The notes under the pieces are model-generated. The model searched no databases, was not told where the DNA came from, and was given only the letters and a program-made list of their open reading frames with translations. Source: Tubulanus polymorphus (taxonomy: Eukaryota > Animalia > Nemertea). From it: a DNA stretch of 64,000 nt. Location: positions 3,844,001-3,908,000 of the forward strand of contig NC_134031.1 in assembly GCF_964204645.1 (NCBI RefSeq), given 5' to 3'. The position numbers and the translations under genes were made by a program. Of this stretch, positions 6,118 to 15,363 are shown piece by piece. Position 1 is the first letter of the stretch. The number at the start of each line of letters is the position of its first letter.

Positions 6118-9100
6118 CTATAACTTGGATTGCAGTTTTCCGAGTTTCTGCATATCTAATAGGGTCTTTTCGAACGTTTCGGCGAGTTTCAGAGCGTCGG
6201 TCTCCGGGTCGCTTTTGAACGCGGTTAGGACGTAGAGTAGTTTGTCCGGTTTCGGATTATAGCAGAATCCGTAGCCGTCCGGGTACATCGGTCCGAAACA
6301 CGTTGTAATATCGTACTTCGACGGAACCTGCAAAATTAAAATAAATAAATATCTTTGTCAAATTTGAATAACGAAATTCTTAATAAATCTGCATTAGCTA
6401 GCTTTGAATAAATAGTCCCACGTTTTATAAGAACTACAGCGGAATCTCGTTATGACAACTTCAGATATAACAATTTATCGGTTATTACAAACCACAAATC
6501 TCATCCCAAATAGGACAATTTTGATAATTTTTCATATAACAAAAATATTTTCTGGTCCCCTGAATTCATAATAACGACGTTCCGCTGTTATTCCGAAAGT
6601 TTATCGAAATGAAAACTACCCCATTCCACCTGGCAATGGCTGTGTTTCTTTTGCCCTCTATTGCACATAGAGAAACAAGATTTACCTAAGCGATGGTTTA
6701 AGCCCAATGAGGAGATGGTTTAAACCGAAAAAAAAACTATATTTTCGATGAAAAGCTTATCTAGTACAGTGCCACCCCTATGATAAAAATGCCATGTGCC
6801 ACAGATTGGCTTAATATAACTGCTACATTTCAAGTAGGCCCATTTCAGCTGCATACTCTACTCATACACTTATAGCTAGTAGTAGTACCCTTCACATTTC
6901 ATATGTTTTCCACCGAGTATTTCATGAATGGGTAATAAATCAAGCAGGTGTCCAAGTTTCAATGATGACCAAAACTATATTTTCTCCATAAGTATATTGA
7001 TGATAAGGGAAATTCATTGACAGACTAGTGTCACGTTACGGGCGACCGAGTAAGTGGTTTTTCAAAGCCGTGTTCAGCCTATCCCAAGCGGCGTTCACAC
7101 TACGTTATTCAGAACGACCTAAATCAAAATGGACCAAGCATACACACTAATGAAAAGTCTGTCCTAAATTGGTCCATTCCCTTTTAGACAAGACCAATTT
7201 GGACTGACCTTAAAGACCGATCCAGGGCGCATTCTTAATTTTAGGAGGAACCATTTCTGTGTGCATGTGTGTGAAAAGAAACTGGTTCCAGGTATTCCAA
7301 TTTATACCCCGAACTGCAGTGTAGACGCGCTGATGAAAGGGTTTATCTGGTTACTCTACTTACTTGACTGCTAGATATTCTGAATCGGACACCAGCGTCG
7401 AATGTTGGATCGGTGATAATCTCAGGTACGGGAAGACGATTCGTTAACGCGGCCAGTTTCAATCCGAACAAATGACGATCGACACCATCCCCAGCCATAC
7501 ACTACAAATAAAACATTACGCACATGTTAGCTTCAACTGGACCGTATGAACCATAGGTGTTAGTGGACAGGTGGTGGCTCTACTGGTCATTCAGCTATGC
7601 TGAATCTTATCATTTGGCATCAAATAAGGCGCAGAAATTCCTTCCCCAGAAAATTTTGAAAAATTTATCTAATTTTCATGCATTTTGAAAGCTTTTGAGC
7701 ATTGCTTTTTATTATCTCATATATTACCAATGTACCAATCTCCTGGCCCATCACTGCTCTTGAATTGGAAACTTAGCTAACTACAGCATACTGAAATTTT
7801 AAGTTCTTCATGACTGCCTGACAAAGGAAATTTTGCTAAACAGAGTTCGTTGGTATTCTGACCTCTCTTCTCCATGCAAAAGATGGAAAAGATATGATCG
7901 ATCTATTAGAAATAGTGTATTGCATTCCAAGAAATGAAATTGATTAAACGCAAGTGGTGCTCAAGGGGCTGCGCGATAAGAAAACTAACACAAAAATCCA
8001 CGACCTTGTTCTACTCACCGCTCTGGTATATTTGCTATGTTCGGTGATTGCCGTTTTCATCAGTTCCGTTTTCGTGTCTGCTGGGACATCGGCGTCCATC
8101 GCTTTACAAAAATCAAGCAAAGCGGACGAACACGCTCGAATGGCCTCCGTCCGACCGAGGCGGAAACCCCTCATCGACGCGCTTTCATAACCGGGCGTTA
8201 CTTTGCCATGCATTCTGACCGTAATGATATTAGAAAAAAATAAAATTTAATTACTCAAGAAAATTAAATTTCATTCACTTTAAAAAATTGGACGATACTA
8301 AATGAAATTTTGTCCAAGTAATAGAACCTTTTCAATACTTTTGTTCAAGTCCACTTTAGACGCGATTTAATGACTTTTATTAAAAGCTTTTTAATCTTTG
8401 ATTACTTTGGAGTATCGCAGCAAATTAATTGCCATCATTACTTTCTTGACAAAAGAATTTGATCAAAACAAATTTCTGTCCATGTCGATTAAATTTCTGA
8501 ATACCGGTACTCATTGTCAAGTTCATATTTGAAATCTACATAAAAATTTTTCTTGAAAGATCGGTGAAAAATTGCATTCAGATCAGGCATCAAAATATTA
8601 CTGACCTATAGTAAGCCAGGTGTATCCCCATTTGTATGAACGCGTCTGGACTGAATTTCAACGACTTTGAAATCGTTTTGCTGAAACCAGTGAAATCACG
8701 AGCACGCAATTCTAATCCATTGACAAGTCTGAAATTAAGGACATAATTACTTAATTATACTAAAGGCTAAATCACCCCAACAACAGGATTCAAACCCATG
8801 AACCACAAGGAATTGTCAAAATAATGCAATTACAATCACCACTGTCCTTAAAAAAATAAAGGGATTGTGGAACTGGTCAATGAGCCATGAACCTTTGATT
8901 GGTAAGATAAGACCTTGAATGACTAAGTGTCTTTACTTCCACTTTTTAACCTGTGACTATTGTATTTCAGAGGGGCATTTTCTATCATTGTTTCTCATTT
9001 TACTCCCAGAAGGGAGTGAGTCAACCAAGGAGGTACTGCAATACCAAGGCCAACCCATGGTGATAGGAAGCAAGCTCCTTTAACTTCACCAAGTGCCAAA

Positions 9101-12100
9101 AATCAGACTAATATCATCAAAGTATCAGATATTAAGCTGACAAGAACAGATACTACACTTCGATCTAAGCCATTGCGGCCGAGAAGCGATACTGTAAAGA
9201 TGTCAGCCAAGTAATATATAGATCAAACTTGTATCTACTGAATAAGTGTTCAACTGATTTCACAGAAAAGGAATAAAATTTTGCATCAGCCCATTAAGCA
9301 AGCTCATAAGCAGATTAATGCAAATCTAGTGTAAAAAATAATTCATTCCAAATTTTTTGGCAATATAAATCGCAAGATTTCCTCGAGAAATTCAGTGAAA
9401 TGTGTGAATAAATTCAGATTTTGCCACATCTAATCACAGCTACCCAGGGTATGCCATTCTGACTCAATAAACGTACTGCTGACAAATCTATTGATTACAC
9501 CATTATGTGATTACACCACTAGCACCAGAATAAATACAGACGAATCTAGAACGTTTCTGCATTGGCCCATTGCCAGAAAAAATGGCACCACAGACAACAG
9601 AATGTGGCCAAAATAGCTCTCTCCCTGGGCCCACCTGATTTCGAAATCCAAAATATAGGGAACTAAATAAGGTATTAGAAAACTCTTGAAAACTAGAGAA
9701 TATATATACATGTTGAGATTTCTTGGAATACAGGAATTTGATAAGACTTCATGAGGACTCCTGCTTCTTAGACCAATGATATAGATGCCAGCCTCCGTAT
9801 TCAAATCTAATTATTCAGAACCAAACTTTTAAAAGTGTAAGAAATCTATGAATAAATGTGACTACCCGAGTTAAATCTGAAATAGTTTTATCATAAAGTT
9901 CTTAAGAGTTGATATGGAAACTTCACGCACTGCACCGTGGTGTAATTTGTTGAATTTCCCCTAAGAAGCTATCAGTATTTCACTTACGTATCAATGTTGC
10001 CGGTAGCTTTTTCAATGGCTTCTTGTACATCTTTCGATACGTTGAAATCGAGCTTCTTCGGATCCTCAACTTTACCAGACGACACCTCACTGTACTCCCC
10101 TTTAGACCTATAGAGGGAAAAAGTTACATATTAAAAATCTATTCTTAAATCATCGGTTTTAATTACGAAAAATTCGAAGAAGTCATTTCAAACCATGGAC
10201 TATTAAACGATTTAAGTCAAACTTGCAGCATGAACTTTAACAAATCATACTGCCATATTTGGCTGATCTGTAAGCCTATGATTGAAAAAATTCCGATACT
10301 CAATGGTTGGACCCAGGTCCTAGTTAAAATTTGACTGTAGGTTAAAGCATTGATAAATTAGCTAACTTTTCATAGTGGTGAAGCATACATAAGTTGTGCC
10401 TCATGCATTTTCATATGATGAGCAATAGCATAGTTGAAGTAAGATATTTTAGTAATGCAAGCTTGTGATGTCACAAAATATCTTAGAGAAATATCATGCG
10501 AGCCATTTTAACCTCATTTCAAATCAAACCGTGAAAACAGGTAGTACAGGTATTCATTTTACAAAAATTACAAATGTACGAGCTTTCGCAACTAGTGCAT
10601 AGGCTTCATCAGGTACAAATTTTTATCTGATGAAACTGCTAATGCATAAGTAGTGAAAGCTCCTAATTTCTAATAAAATCAGTCAACCTGTTTTCACACA
10701 TTTATTGATAGAATATCATGAAAAATTCAGCTTCACACAAAATGCAAATCTCTGACATCAAAAATAGTTTGTTTCAGCCAGAAATCAGACAAATAAAGTG
10801 AAGGACGTACTCGAATGCAAAAGCTGCCAATAACTGAGAATCTTTGTGTCATCACGAGCAAGTTGATAAGTCAAATACGTTCACTTACATATGATCGACT
10901 ACATGCTCTAGTACAGATAGCACAACTGTGGCCTCGGCGGGAGAATGCTCGTAACAAGCCCCGAAACTACCGTCCGACCCTACAAACATCTAAAATAGAT
11001 AAAGGCGCCAGTTGCCCGGGCAGATGGATCGTTGAGTCAGACTTTCTGTGAAGTTGTAAATTGTACATGACCAAATTTGTGGAGAACGGTTACTGCCCAG
11101 GGAACATTTCATGGACTGAAGAAACCACGGTAGTTCAAATGTTTCTCAACAGATTGTATGTAGCATATTTTGGATGTAAATAATTTAGGAGGTACCCAAT
11201 GGTAACTACCTAACTCAGGCCTGTACAGTACGCTGCGTACTGGGGTAAAATTTTCCAAAATCTTCAAATTAGCTCCAGCATTTTAGGGTTAGAATTCTCT
11301 CCAGCAACAAAATATTTCGCAAAAAGTTCTGAATTCAGCTATAAATAGGAGGGGATCCATGCCTAGAAATTCAACATAAATGCATCGTGTTAATCTAGGT
11401 ATTCCTACCAAAATCCAGTAGGCCTACCATACTCGGAAGTTAGTTCAAGCAAAATAAATCATTTCATAAACGCAAGTCCACTTTCATTCATTCAAAATAA
11501 CTCACTAAATTTCATTTATCTGAAATCTGGATAGGAAGAGTAAAGAAAATGTTGTCTAAAGCACTATCTATCTATGAGCTGGTGCTACCATTCACTATGC
11601 ATGTGTAAGACTCACATTAACTCGACCGCGTGGTCGAGTATAGCTACTAGGGCTGGGGCTTCAGCTGCTGTATGTTCGTACGCCCCGCCCACCGAACCAT
11701 CAACACCCACTATCATCTATATATGACGTACACAAATTGTCATTTTAACAGAATCAATGCGTTCAAAAAATGTCTATGTCGGCTTGGGCCGGATGCTCAA
11801 AAAAGTTTTATTAGTCGGTATCATATCTTAATATGATAGCTTAATTACAGTAGTCTCTCTGTTTAACATTGTATATATATATATCTCATAATTTTGTTGT
11901 AATTTTAGCAATCCTGAAGACGACTGTTAGGAAATAGTCCAAACGTTCAAATAAACTACTAGCTCAAGGAAACTTCACAGACTCTAATTAAAAGAATTTA
12001 CATCATCAATCTACTATCTTTATCATCATTGCTTATCATAAAACTTTTTTTCTAGGGGCCAGAACGCCCTTGTGATAGTACAGCCTTTATGGCACTGTTT

Positions 12101-15100
12101 AACCCCAATCATCAATTGACTAAATCTATCTATCATATTCCATTTATTTTCGTAATCTTTTTGATGGTGAAATAGATATCATTATCATCATAGGCCTAAT
12201 TCATCCTTATCGCGAGATGTTTATATTATCGAGGATCATCGGTTTCAGAATAATTATTCACTGAACGCACCTGAAACGTTTTATCGAACCAACGATTCGT
12301 GCTGTTGTATTTACTGCCGCCGCCGCAAAGCATCTGATAGCCGATCGCGCTGTCGACGTCCCAACCCTCGGCCGATCGGTCGATTTGTCGATCGAGACAT
12401 AAAACGAAAACGCTGTTCTGAATCGATCGCAGCGACGCCAAGTTCTTCTTATCTGAAAAATCGACGAAAACTTGCTTATTTCGAACGTACTTCAATTTCC
12501 TGTTTCATGTCCATTGCTTCAATATAGTTAGTGTAGACACTTATAGGTGGCGATATCAGCAGTATAATTCAGCCTGCTTGGCTACGTGTGGCAAGAGCAT
12601 GGATTTATGTGCAGCCTATTAATTTTCTTATCCACCGCCTGGTCGCCATTGACCTTCAAACTCATCTAAAGTATCAAAAGTGTAATTTTCTGATAGACAT
12701 CATAATAGATAGTTTTAAGCGTATAAATCCTTGTTTTGCAAGATTTCAAAGAAAGCATAACCTCACCAAATTGATTGAACACTAGGGGAGTCACTTTGAT
12801 CATGTTAATTGAACAGTTCTGGGTCCTACATCTTCAATCCTCAATCCTGACACCCCCTTGGTTAAACAATCTTGCATCTTCGACCATATATCATCAACAA
12901 GCACCAGTATTCATTTTTTCATACAGATAGTTACCTTGTATTAGGGTATCATAAGCGTTGGCCCATGTTGTACGATCTTCGGTGGTCAAAACACCAACGG
13001 GCGACGTAGATTTTTCTCGCGATTGATCGACGATCTTTTCGAGTCCTTTATTGAGTTCGTCGATGCTTAACGGTTTTCCGTCTGCGCCGTAAACGTTAAG
13101 TTCGAAAAACTGCGAATAACGAGATCAAGTTTATCGAAACCGAAGAGAACCGGTAACATCTCGTAAACATCCGCCGAAGAAATACTCACATGGTTATTGC
13201 GTAAAACGGTTACGTGCTTCGATGAACTCGGACCGTGCGGTAATCGGACGATGTTGTCGCTTTCGACTCCGGGAACTCGACAAGTGTTGAGCAGCGAGTA
13301 ATACTGATTCATGCATTGCGGTTGTTTGCCAGCTAAATCGACTGGTAAAGCAAAACTATAAGAATACAAACCAAATCATCAACTATCTCATACTATTCTT
13401 CTTCCATGCAGGTTTCAATCAGCAGCTTGTAACCTCTCTTTAGAAATTCACCATTTTTACCATTAAGTCTGGGCGATCACTTCTTGAATGTGTGGCCGGT
13501 TGCTCATAAGTTGGTTAAAGCTAACCAGTGGATGGTGACAATTAAAATTCCGTTGTTACTATGGTATTCATCCGCTGTTTTTCTTTAACCAACCTTTCAG
13601 CAATCTGGCCCCTGGTGTTTTTAGTTCATTAATCAGTTTCAATTTCAGTTAGCAATGCCTGAGGTGAAATCAGATTTACAATCAATGCTTAAACTTACTT
13701 GTCCAAAATTTTCTTATAGTCGAGAACGCCAGCAATGCACTGTGCAGCAAATCTAGAAAAGATACATCACATTAACAGGGGTTTCGTTCTGAAATGGTCC
13801 AAAACATATATCTTCTCTGCTGGGGTGTAGCTTGAATAACATCACGAGACTGCCAAAAATGAAATATCAATAGAATCATTGCGATAAAGTTTTGATAGAG
13901 TGCGCCCCCGCTTACCGGCATTGTTCTTGTACACCGCTAAATTTCTGTGGTTTGAAAATCAATCCTGGATTTGAATTTATTACGATCGGATCGCGGGACT
14001 TCATGTAGACGTAATGGATGAACCAATCAGATAACTGCATAAACATACAAAATAAATCAGTAAGGTCAGTTTGATAGCAGGAATAAAAAAGGATTTCTAA
14101 TTGGCTAATAATGAGTGACATGATCTAAACTGCGCATTGTAACTGCGCAGTCAGGCCAGTCAGGCAGGGTTTCATACGCTAGCGAGTCTCTGTGCCATCA
14201 GGTTCGAATCCCTGCTGAAGGAGGATGTTGGTACGTTGATGTGTGGGTTCATCAGCCTAGCGGTAGCTTGATTCGAGCGCTGTTTCCAATTTTGTCAAAC
14301 GTTCTCTTACCCAGTTTTCCTTTGTAATTGCCAGATCGAGAAGCATTTTCTGCAGCTTCGGTCCATCTCCATTAGCGTCTAGCAACTTCGCCGCGAGCTG
14401 GAAAAAACCATCATTCCAGTCGGATACAAAAAAGTGAAAAATTCAAAAAAGTAAAACATCAAATTCCAAGCATAAAATGAATCAAAAATCAAATGAAGTG
14501 ACTATTTTTATGTCACCCATAGGAGTCAATTTCTACCTGTGAAATAACCATGAAAATTGGAACTCAAAGACGCAAGCCAACAAGGCCAGATGCCAACACA
14601 AAACGTTTTCACTACTTATAGCCTAATCTTGACCTACCCTATTATAATGTATAGCCTAGGCTAAACCTACCCTATCATAATGCATTAACCAGTAGGCCTA
14701 CCTAACCCGAATGCCCTGGACCAAAAATGTATTTTTGCCTGGACCTAGGCCTATATAAACCCTAGAACTTGAACCCTAAACCAATTACCGATTTGTTACG
14801 TTCATATTCAGGATCGGCGACCAGCGGTCGAATGGACTTCAAATATTTATCGACCGTCTGCTGCAGAGGAGGCACTGGCAAGCGGCCGAGGCCTTCTTGT
14901 TTGACAACAACATGTTTGTTATCACCAGCGCTCGGCAGCGTACTGTAGTAGTGGTCCGGTTGAGAAGCATTCTTGTTGTAGTTGCTACCGGATGTCAACA
15001 CTCTGCTGCTACCCCTGCACACTAACTCCCTGTACTGGACCTGAAAAGTATATCAACATGAAATAGACAATGTTTGACGACACTACGCACTCTGTAACCT

Positions 15101-15363
15101 TCGCCAAATCCGATGCATTTGAAAAGCCAAATTTGTAGAGTAGGCCCTAAAAACCCTCTAAATATAGCTCTGTATGAACTATTCATAGTGCACATATTTC
15201 ATATTCAGCAGATAAATAGTTACTGTGATTTAGTATAGGCCTATATAGAAAAGGCCATTCCCCAATGACAATATTTAAAAAAAAACTTTTTAGGTTTTTA
15301 CTTGTAAAAGAAAATCTTCGAATACTTGGTGCTTACCATCGTCCTTGTCACGTGCCGTAACAT
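6118..15363 (-). CDS. CRAT: Carnitine O-acetyltransferase, 14 coding exons with two alternative copies of exon 9, about 649 aa
   Basis: Exons with GT-AG ends and consistent phases: 15337-15363, 14789-15040, 14311-14397, 13916-14034, 13699-13752, 13190-13355, 12935-13109, 12271-12452, [11616-11716 or 10889-10989], 9988-10107, 8606-8728, 8019-8214, 7364-7501, 6118-6327 (sum 1950 nt). Motifs: LPVPPLQQT, NRWFDKT, YEH catalytic His, SPDAFIQ, YESAS, GRTE, GVDRHL, FGP..PDGYG. C-terminal SKL. Confidence 0.95.
6437..6587. mobile_element. Tc1/mariner-type MITE
   Basis: TA-CAGCGGAA..CGTTAT / ATAACGACGTTCCGCTG termini. Relative at about 45213-45359 shares TTCTGGTCCCCTGAA. Confidence 0.6.
10575..10662. 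ncRNA. Inverted pair of minimal hammerhead motifs in a CRAT intron
   Basis: Minus 10575-10617: UGUAC-CUGAUGA...GC-GAAA-GC-UC-GUACA. Plus 10627-10662: CUGAUGA-A-ACUGCU..AGUAGU-GAAA-GC-UC. Outer inverted repeat GTGAAAACAGGT / ACCTGTTTTCAC. Confidence 0.65.
10889..10989 (-). CDS. CRAT: CRAT alternative exon 9b (MFVGSDGSFGACYEHSPAEATVVLSVLEHVVDH)
   Basis: 101 nt, TTTTAG acceptor and GTAAG donor, same phases as 9a, open frame containing YEHSPAE. Confidence 0.9.
11616..11716 (-). CDS. CRAT: CRAT alternative exon 9a (MIVGVDGSVGGAYEHTAAEAPALVAILDHAVEL)
   Basis: 101 nt, AG acceptor and GTGAG donor, phase 0 to 2, open frame containing the YEH catalytic motif. Confidence 0.9.
11914..11947 (+). ncRNA. 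Degenerate hammerhead motif
   Basis: CUGAAGA-C-GACUGUU(AGGA)AAUAGUC-cAAA-CG-UU. GAAA is mutated to CAAA. Confidence 0.45.

Follow-up and report, generated by a model that had tools for sequence, protein, structure and literature searches.

Either/or duplicated exons that tune enzyme cores are already known from several genes. In vertebrates, KHK-A/C, exon 3 of ACOX1 and the gate exons of ACSL1 and ACSL6 are of this kind, the exon variants of ACOX1 and ACSL differing in acyl-chain preference; these enzymes have folds other than that of the carnitine acyltransferases, and the duplication events are not homologous to the one described below. Similarly, PKM1/PKM2 is a metabolic enzyme tuned by either/or duplicated exons, again a vertebrate gene with another fold and a non-homologous event (PMC7954323). 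For the homologous mutually exclusive exons of human, mouse, fish and fly treated by Lam et al. (2021), the fold is kept while residues at or near the functional site are changed, and nine events affect catalytic sites (PMC7954323); carnitine acyltransferases are unmentioned in the main text of that study. The coq-2 gene of helminths, annelids and molluscs carries exons 6a and 6e, equal-length homologous mutually exclusive exons of 134 nt (not a multiple of three) that remodel the enzyme core, one copy being ancestral-like and the other derived (PMC7434440). Within the choline/carnitine acyltransferase family itself, either/or exons are known from Ixodes ChAT (exons 13/14; PMC7524744).

The exon pair considered here belongs to the CrAT gene of the nemertean Tubulanus polymorphus. 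It shares with coq-2 the equal length, the homology of the two copies and the combination of one ancestral-like with one derived copy; unlike the coq-2 exons, it carries the catalytic base itself. A substrate switch shared across phyla has been shown for coq-2 (PMC7434440), whereas the Tubulanus pair is known from one species so far and its function is predicted. As in the cases of Lam et al., the fold appears to be kept and residues close to the functional site are exchanged, but the catalytic residues, which change in some of those cases (PMC7954323), are invariant here. The Ixodes exons lie well downstream of the histidine exon, are unequal in length and sequence and are no duplicates, in contrast to the Tubulanus pair. 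A literature search, whose coverage excludes most subscription journals, returned no report of such duplicated exons in CrAT.

The window, i.e., the whole stretch of 64,000 nucleotides that was analysed (NC_134031.1, positions 3,844,001 to 3,908,000, assembly GCF_964204645.1), contains a choline/carnitine acyltransferase gene on the minus strand that runs from 15363 to 6118 in window coordinates and has 14 coding-exon positions, the ninth of which is doubled (9a and 9b). The first coding exon (15337..15363) provides nine codons that start an Arg-rich leader and is placed by its match to the RefSeq N-terminus and its GT donor. Exon 2 (14789..15040, 252 nt) follows from the frame test of the spliced model and from the RefSeq protein, exons 3 (14311..14397, 87 nt) and 5 (13699..13752, 54 nt) from the frame test, while exon 4 (13916..14034, 119 nt) carries F127 and Y132 at the positions of CrAT Trp102 and Tyr107. 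Exons 6 (13190..13355, 166 nt) and 7 (12935..13109, 175 nt) are spliced in an RNA contig, in which the constitutive exons upstream and downstream of the pair, exon 8 (12271..12452, 182 nt, exit phase 0) and exon 10 (9988..10107, 120 nt, entry phase 2), are both joined to 9b. The same contig includes exon 11 (8606..8728, 123 nt) with the CoA-binding residues K445, K449 and D456 (Lys419, Lys423 and Asp430 of CrAT). Exon 12 (8019..8214, 196 nt) holds the carnitine-site residues Y478, S480 and T491 (Tyr452, Ser454 and Thr465), exon 13 (7364..7501, 138 nt) holds R543 (Arg518) and the STS motif in its SSS form, and the last coding exon, exon 14 (6118..6327), holds T589 at the Met564 pocket-gate position, M594 (Val569), a C-terminal SKL and the stop.

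The preliminary description of this DNA had reported two tandem 101-nt CrAT exons, and these are present with matching peptides, 9a at 11716-11616 and 9b at 10989-10889, separated by an intron of 626 nt. Both are flanked by AG and GT, enter in phase 0 and exit in phase 2, and they are identical at 57% of DNA positions and at 16 of 33 residues; the splice signals of 9a fall inside the range of the other exons of the gene. In a frame test, either copy alone gives an open 649-aa protein through the stop in exon 14. That inclusion of both or of neither breaks the frame, as had also been stated, holds in detail: 9a followed by 9b meets a stop 7 nt into 9b, and with neither copy a stop follows 3 nt into exon 10. 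In the genome the 9a region has no second copy, and the only other similar exon is on the contig labelled C4. Chance resemblance is excluded, as are an assembly or haplotype duplicate and an allelic origin of the pair: the 9a region is single-copy, the 300-nt flanks of 9a and 9b align no better than shuffles and synonymous sites are near saturation.

On the evidence of sequence and structure model, the gene product is assigned as a CrAT orthologue. The best matches among solved structures for the full 9b protein are mouse and human CrAT, with 568 bits compared to 403 for ChAT, and the model of the 9b isoform (pLDDT 89) superposes on human CrAT 1nm8 with an rmsd of 1.3 A and a TM score of 0.97 by target. 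In a tree, made in a quick version only, the protein falls on the CrAT side with a long branch. Both isoforms keep H369 (His343) and E373 (Glu347) in addition to K445, K449 and D456; the roles of H343, K419, K423 and D430 in CrAT have been described (PMC11852590). Equivalents of the carnitine-site residues Y107, Y452, S454, T465, R518 and F566 are likewise retained, while W102, otherwise invariant in the alignment, is Phe. At the Met564 gate the constitutive part of the protein has Thr589, a residue found there in two of 66 aligned proteins, with Met, Leu or Phe in 60 of the 62 that have a residue at this position; the second protein with Thr is a divergent hagfish protein, which also has Ala348. 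Judged by these residues, the enzyme would be a CrAT orthologue lacking the bulky Met564 gate, and its chain range may differ from that of CrAT. The Arg-rich leader resembles a mitochondrial presequence and, together with the C-terminal SKL, suggests mitochondrial and peroxisomal targeting. Mammalian CrAT (1nm8, 1ndb) and CROT thus agree with the Tubulanus protein in fold, catalytic, CoA and most carnitine residues and in having an N-terminal leader and a C-terminal xKL; the Tubulanus CrAT differs from the mammalian one by the equivalents of W102F, G348A, M564T and V569M, by its long branch and by the doubling of a catalytic exon that is single in all outgroup loci checked. As for the last of these substitutions, the worm wild type has Met (M594, exon 14, at about 6270-6290) at the position of human Val569, and human CRAT V569M has been linked to one case of Leigh syndrome (PMC11852590).

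Elsewhere in the genome the family is represented, judging by exon fragments, by a ChAT-type gene (contig C4), a CROT-like gene (C6), a CPT1-like cluster (C1) with a further CPT1-like gene (C12), a CPT2-like gene (C31) and a pair on C10. As these are of other types or very divergent, the window gene seems to be the only canonical CrAT in the genome. The ChAT-type gene (C4:3823800-3834900) has Val and a non-Arg residue at the carnitine-carboxylate positions, finds its best match in a centipede ChAT and shows the catalytic motif His-x3-Glu-Ala, as do both CrAT exons. The tandem cluster at C1:23184000-23226000 consists of one canonical CPT1-like gene and roughly five divergent CPT1-like copies whose carnitine-site motifs are altered. 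At C10:1381000-1396000 there are two tandem, very divergent carnitine acyltransferase-like copies, in which the profile recognised no catalytic-histidine exon.

According to the model, exon 9 encodes residues 355-387, which form a beta hairpin, His369 and a helix (374-390), and the original placement of His343, Glu347 and Asp356 on this exon is correct. Residues G361, G364, Y367, E368, H369, A372, E373, A374 and H383 are identical in the two copies, among them the equivalents of E342, H343 and E347, while 17 of the 33 exon residues differ, leaving the isoforms 97% identical as proteins. Since the catalytic residues are the same, the swap alters second-shell and pocket-lining residues and not catalysis itself. 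The idea that splicing switches the active site and the acyl-pocket wall is therefore retained for putative pocket-lining and second-shell residues, and is dropped for the catalytic ones. At His+13, the Asp356 position, 9a has D and 9b has E, as first noted, and Asp356 is said, in work by Cordente from 2006, to affect acyl chain length together with Met564. Glu356 also occurs in the single-exon CrATs of Argonauta and other cephalopods, however, so that the D/E difference alone is weak evidence; non-Pro residues at 349 are found in several ordinary CrATs, and most of the swaps are conservative. Ala in place of Gly348, against Gly in 125 of 129 family homologues, was likewise read correctly; being common to 9a and 9b (and present in the T. 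polymorphus ChAT-type gene and a snail CrAT as well), it is no part of a switch.

Better candidates than D/E356 are, from sequence comparison, the changes at His-4, His+6, His+7 and His+8 in combination with the constitutive Met564-to-Thr replacement, which the preliminary description had overlooked. Positions His-4 (G/A) and His+8 (L/V) match C323 and M335 of CROT, which line the bottom of the octanoyl pocket and for which C323M and M335V mutant structures exist. By its spacing from His473, P479 of CPT1A corresponds to His+6 (P/T), and CPT1A P479L lowers activity (PMC10076611). Conservation in the family is high at His+6 (124/129), His+7 (124/129) and His+13 (125/129). Overall, with Pro at His+6 and Asp at His+13, 9a stands nearer to the canonical CrAT form, while 9b, with Thr and Glu, is the more derived copy; 201 of 222 homologues resemble 9a more than 9b, so that the copy found in RNA is the more derived of the two.

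The explanation that we favour, with confidence in the whole of it a little above even, starts from an ancestral 101-nt catalytic-histidine exon of CrAT. On the line of descent to Tubulanus, a tandem duplication would have given two copies, each retained under purifying selection and the two spliced one at a time. Each product would be a carnitine acyltransferase, and the two would agree in fold, catalytic residues and carnitine-binding residues, the 17 differing residues being predicted to lie on the strand before the His, in the loop after it and in the following helix. In solved relatives, the strand, loop and helix around the catalytic His line the acyl-group pocket. Because Thr replaces Met564 at the shared gate, the pocket probably stands wider open than that of mammalian CrAT, and with a smaller gate residue the exon-swapped positions could become accessible to longer chains. 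Swapped pocket-region residues and the Thr gate together point to a quantitative difference between the isoforms, not to one in reaction type; it would concern turnover, the preferred acyl chains (short as opposed to short-to-medium or branched), or both. That the isoforms act as two enzymes of different specificity, as the preliminary description had it, is plausible by sequence, and on balance we lean towards expecting a kinetic or specificity difference large enough to be measured. A further-reaching version, in which the widened pocket and regulated 9a/9b splicing toggle the protein between a short-chain CrAT-like enzyme and a medium-chain or differently regulated CROT-like one, is put forward tentatively and appears rather unlikely; if true, it would give the engineered pocket mutants of CrAT a natural counterpart and be, by literature search, the first such switch found in carnitine acyltransferases.

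Alternatively, both exons may be used while the isoforms are near-equivalent enzymatically, the pair being kept by tissue or stage subfunctionalisation, by slight differences in how stable the isoforms are or how they are regulated, or as a valve that couples splicing to decay and so adjusts the CrAT level. The identity of the catalytic residues is consistent with this reading, as is the fact that many changes are conservative and inside natural CrAT variation, and a decay valve would agree with the early stops carried by the both and neither forms. On the other hand, more than half of the exon residues differ in spite of the strong family conservation at His+6, His+7 and His+13, and 9b has moved away from the family, yet it is the expressed form. 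We consider near-equivalence possible but somewhat unlikely.

Support for the use of the two exons comes from annotation and from RNA. A search with exon 8 alone finds a RefSeq protein of 649 aa identical to the gene, and its RefSeq cluster has two Tubulanus polymorphus members, XP_074655246.1 (isoform X2, 9a) and XP_074655245.1 (isoform X1, 9b), whose sole differences are the 17 residues separating 9a from 9b. Automatic annotation hence already holds the either/or pair, without comment. In RNA run X4, a contig of 1,683 nt with a depth of 82.8 splices E6-E7-E8-9b-E10-E11 at the predicted junctions. Of the four junctions that the original proposal had predicted, 12271>10989 and 10889>10107 are thus present, while the two for 9a (12271>11716 and 11616>10107) are absent from the contigs, which stem from one individual. 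These contigs are assembled, filtered records rather than raw reads and lose minor variants, so that a missing 9a junction is not proof of absence. In the one RNA sample the 9b form predominates, and 9a is probably a minor or tissue-restricted one. A fourth RNA run (X5), from 2015 and labelled as the same species, has no sampled words in common with this DNA and no match at 88% likeness; it may come from a different, look-alike species.

A third reading takes 9a for the ancestral copy, recently silenced or polymorphic and replaced by 9b, with RefSeq X2 stemming from protein alignment or noisy splicing. It fits the RNA, which shows 9b only, and the resemblance of 9a to the homologous proteins an aligner would use. 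It also fits a gap at about 11490-11860, a region that contains 9a and of which 11502-11829 is free of contigs in all three runs from one individual (X4 together with X2 and X3, which are from the same sample and look genomic). Further holes common to the runs occur in plain intron, however, so that holes carry no proof; the one over 9a is probably due to low coverage or to filtering, a polymorphism for the presence of 9a being possible. Silencing is also hard to reconcile with the sequence of the exon. Between 9a and 9b, pS is 0.73, near saturation, and pN is 0.33 (Fisher p=5e-4), a pairwise comparison that very recent silencing would escape and with which a very recent loss is therefore compatible. 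The differences fall on 13 of 33 first, 7 of 33 second and 23 of 33 third codon positions, and different codons are used at 10 of the 16 residues the copies have in common. In a neutral simulation at distances of at least 1.0, none of 20,000 runs kept splice sites, open frame and 16 of 33 residues. In spite of the saturated synonymous divergence, 9a has kept AG and GT, its exact length, an open frame, every family-invariant residue and the full profile score (60.5 versus 60.7 bits for the two copies), besides splice signals within the range of the other exons. A silent 9a is accordingly judged improbable. We regard true either/or splicing of 9a and 9b, in contrast, as highly probable: frame logic, purifying selection, the 9b junctions in RNA and the RefSeq isoforms all argue for the mutually exclusive use first proposed, with the use of 9a itself drawn from the RefSeq model and from selection.

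An exon of 101 nt with the same boundaries is single-copy in seven outgroup CrAT genes (Owenia, Lingula, Ptychodera, Lymnaea, whose locus is partly N, Liolophura, Argonauta and Mytilus trossulus). Together with the saturated divergence of the pair, this indicates a duplication that is old but lineage-restricted, and by sequence the pair is taken to be old and selectively maintained. A representative search with exon 8 and homologue searches yielded no second nemertean CrAT, the closest hit being a fragment on a contig of 796 nt, and no isoform pair at the catalytic exon was seen for other species in ten clusters. Exon versions in Ptychodera and Elysia are no isoform pairs either, the two of Ptychodera sitting in two genes and those of Elysia belonging to paralogues or different species. 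That gene conversion from the ChAT gene had produced 9b was rejected by inspection, as 9a and 9b have mutual features and neither is especially close to the C4 exon. In Owenia fusiformis, the CrAT gene (L015:30715-32270) has, directly behind the catalytic exon, a 51-bp unit repeated in tandem about 31 times; this unit corresponds to the 3' end of the exon plus its splice donor, and the array is a separate case of duplication, of part of the exon only, at this site.

A shift of 9b towards choline acetyltransferase activity, which would make the pair a CrAT/ChAT switch, is very improbable. In its favour, 9b taken by itself has a slight edge for rat ChAT over CrAT in the PDB (E 0.0036 versus 0.0083), and some of its residues resemble ChAT, namely Ser at His+1 and Glu at His+13, together with the lack of Pro-Pro. 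Against it, constitutive exons retain, as T491 and R543, the carnitine-carboxylate pair Thr465 and Arg518 that is replaced in ChAT, the full 9b protein clearly scores higher against CrAT, and the genome has its separate ChAT-type gene on C4. This leaves the choline option of the preliminary description unlikely.

Returning to either/or splicing, no physical device for exclusion was detected at the locus: the intron between the copies is not short, all donors are U2-type without any U12/U2 mismatch, and no intron duplex of the docking-selector kind stands clearly above shuffled controls. Such a device is unnecessary, as frame-based decay can suffice. Since double inclusion or double skipping leads to a premature stop, full-length protein comes from single-copy mRNAs only, and the frameshifted products would be cleared by nonsense-mediated decay. 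The simplest account of exclusion would accordingly combine regulated or competitive exon choice with decay of the two frameshifted products. The introns near the pair hold further elements. Short multi-copy intron elements, recognisable by depth spikes and loose contig ends, lie around the pair at about 11912-11985 and 10645-10690, and 10577-10665 is an imperfect inverted repeat. In the intron after exon 10, a full-length U2 snRNA-like sequence occupies 9011-9190 on the minus strand (Rfam, 118.7 bits). Its stem-I loop is altered, and one base is inserted directly ahead of the region that pairs with the branch site. Positions 9015-9169 of it are covered by a contig of low depth from the RNA run, and it is either a variant U2 or a pseudogene.

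The mapping of chain-length selectivity in carnitine acyltransferases has relied mostly on engineered point mutants, the M564G pocket mutants of mammalian CrAT (1t7n, 2h3w) among them. Here, two natural, nearly identical proteins differ only around the catalytic His, so that one enzyme assay would show the contribution of the strand-loop-helix segment. If the isoforms differ, the splicing of a single gene would allow the worm to adjust its mitochondrial and peroxisomal acyl-CoA buffering.
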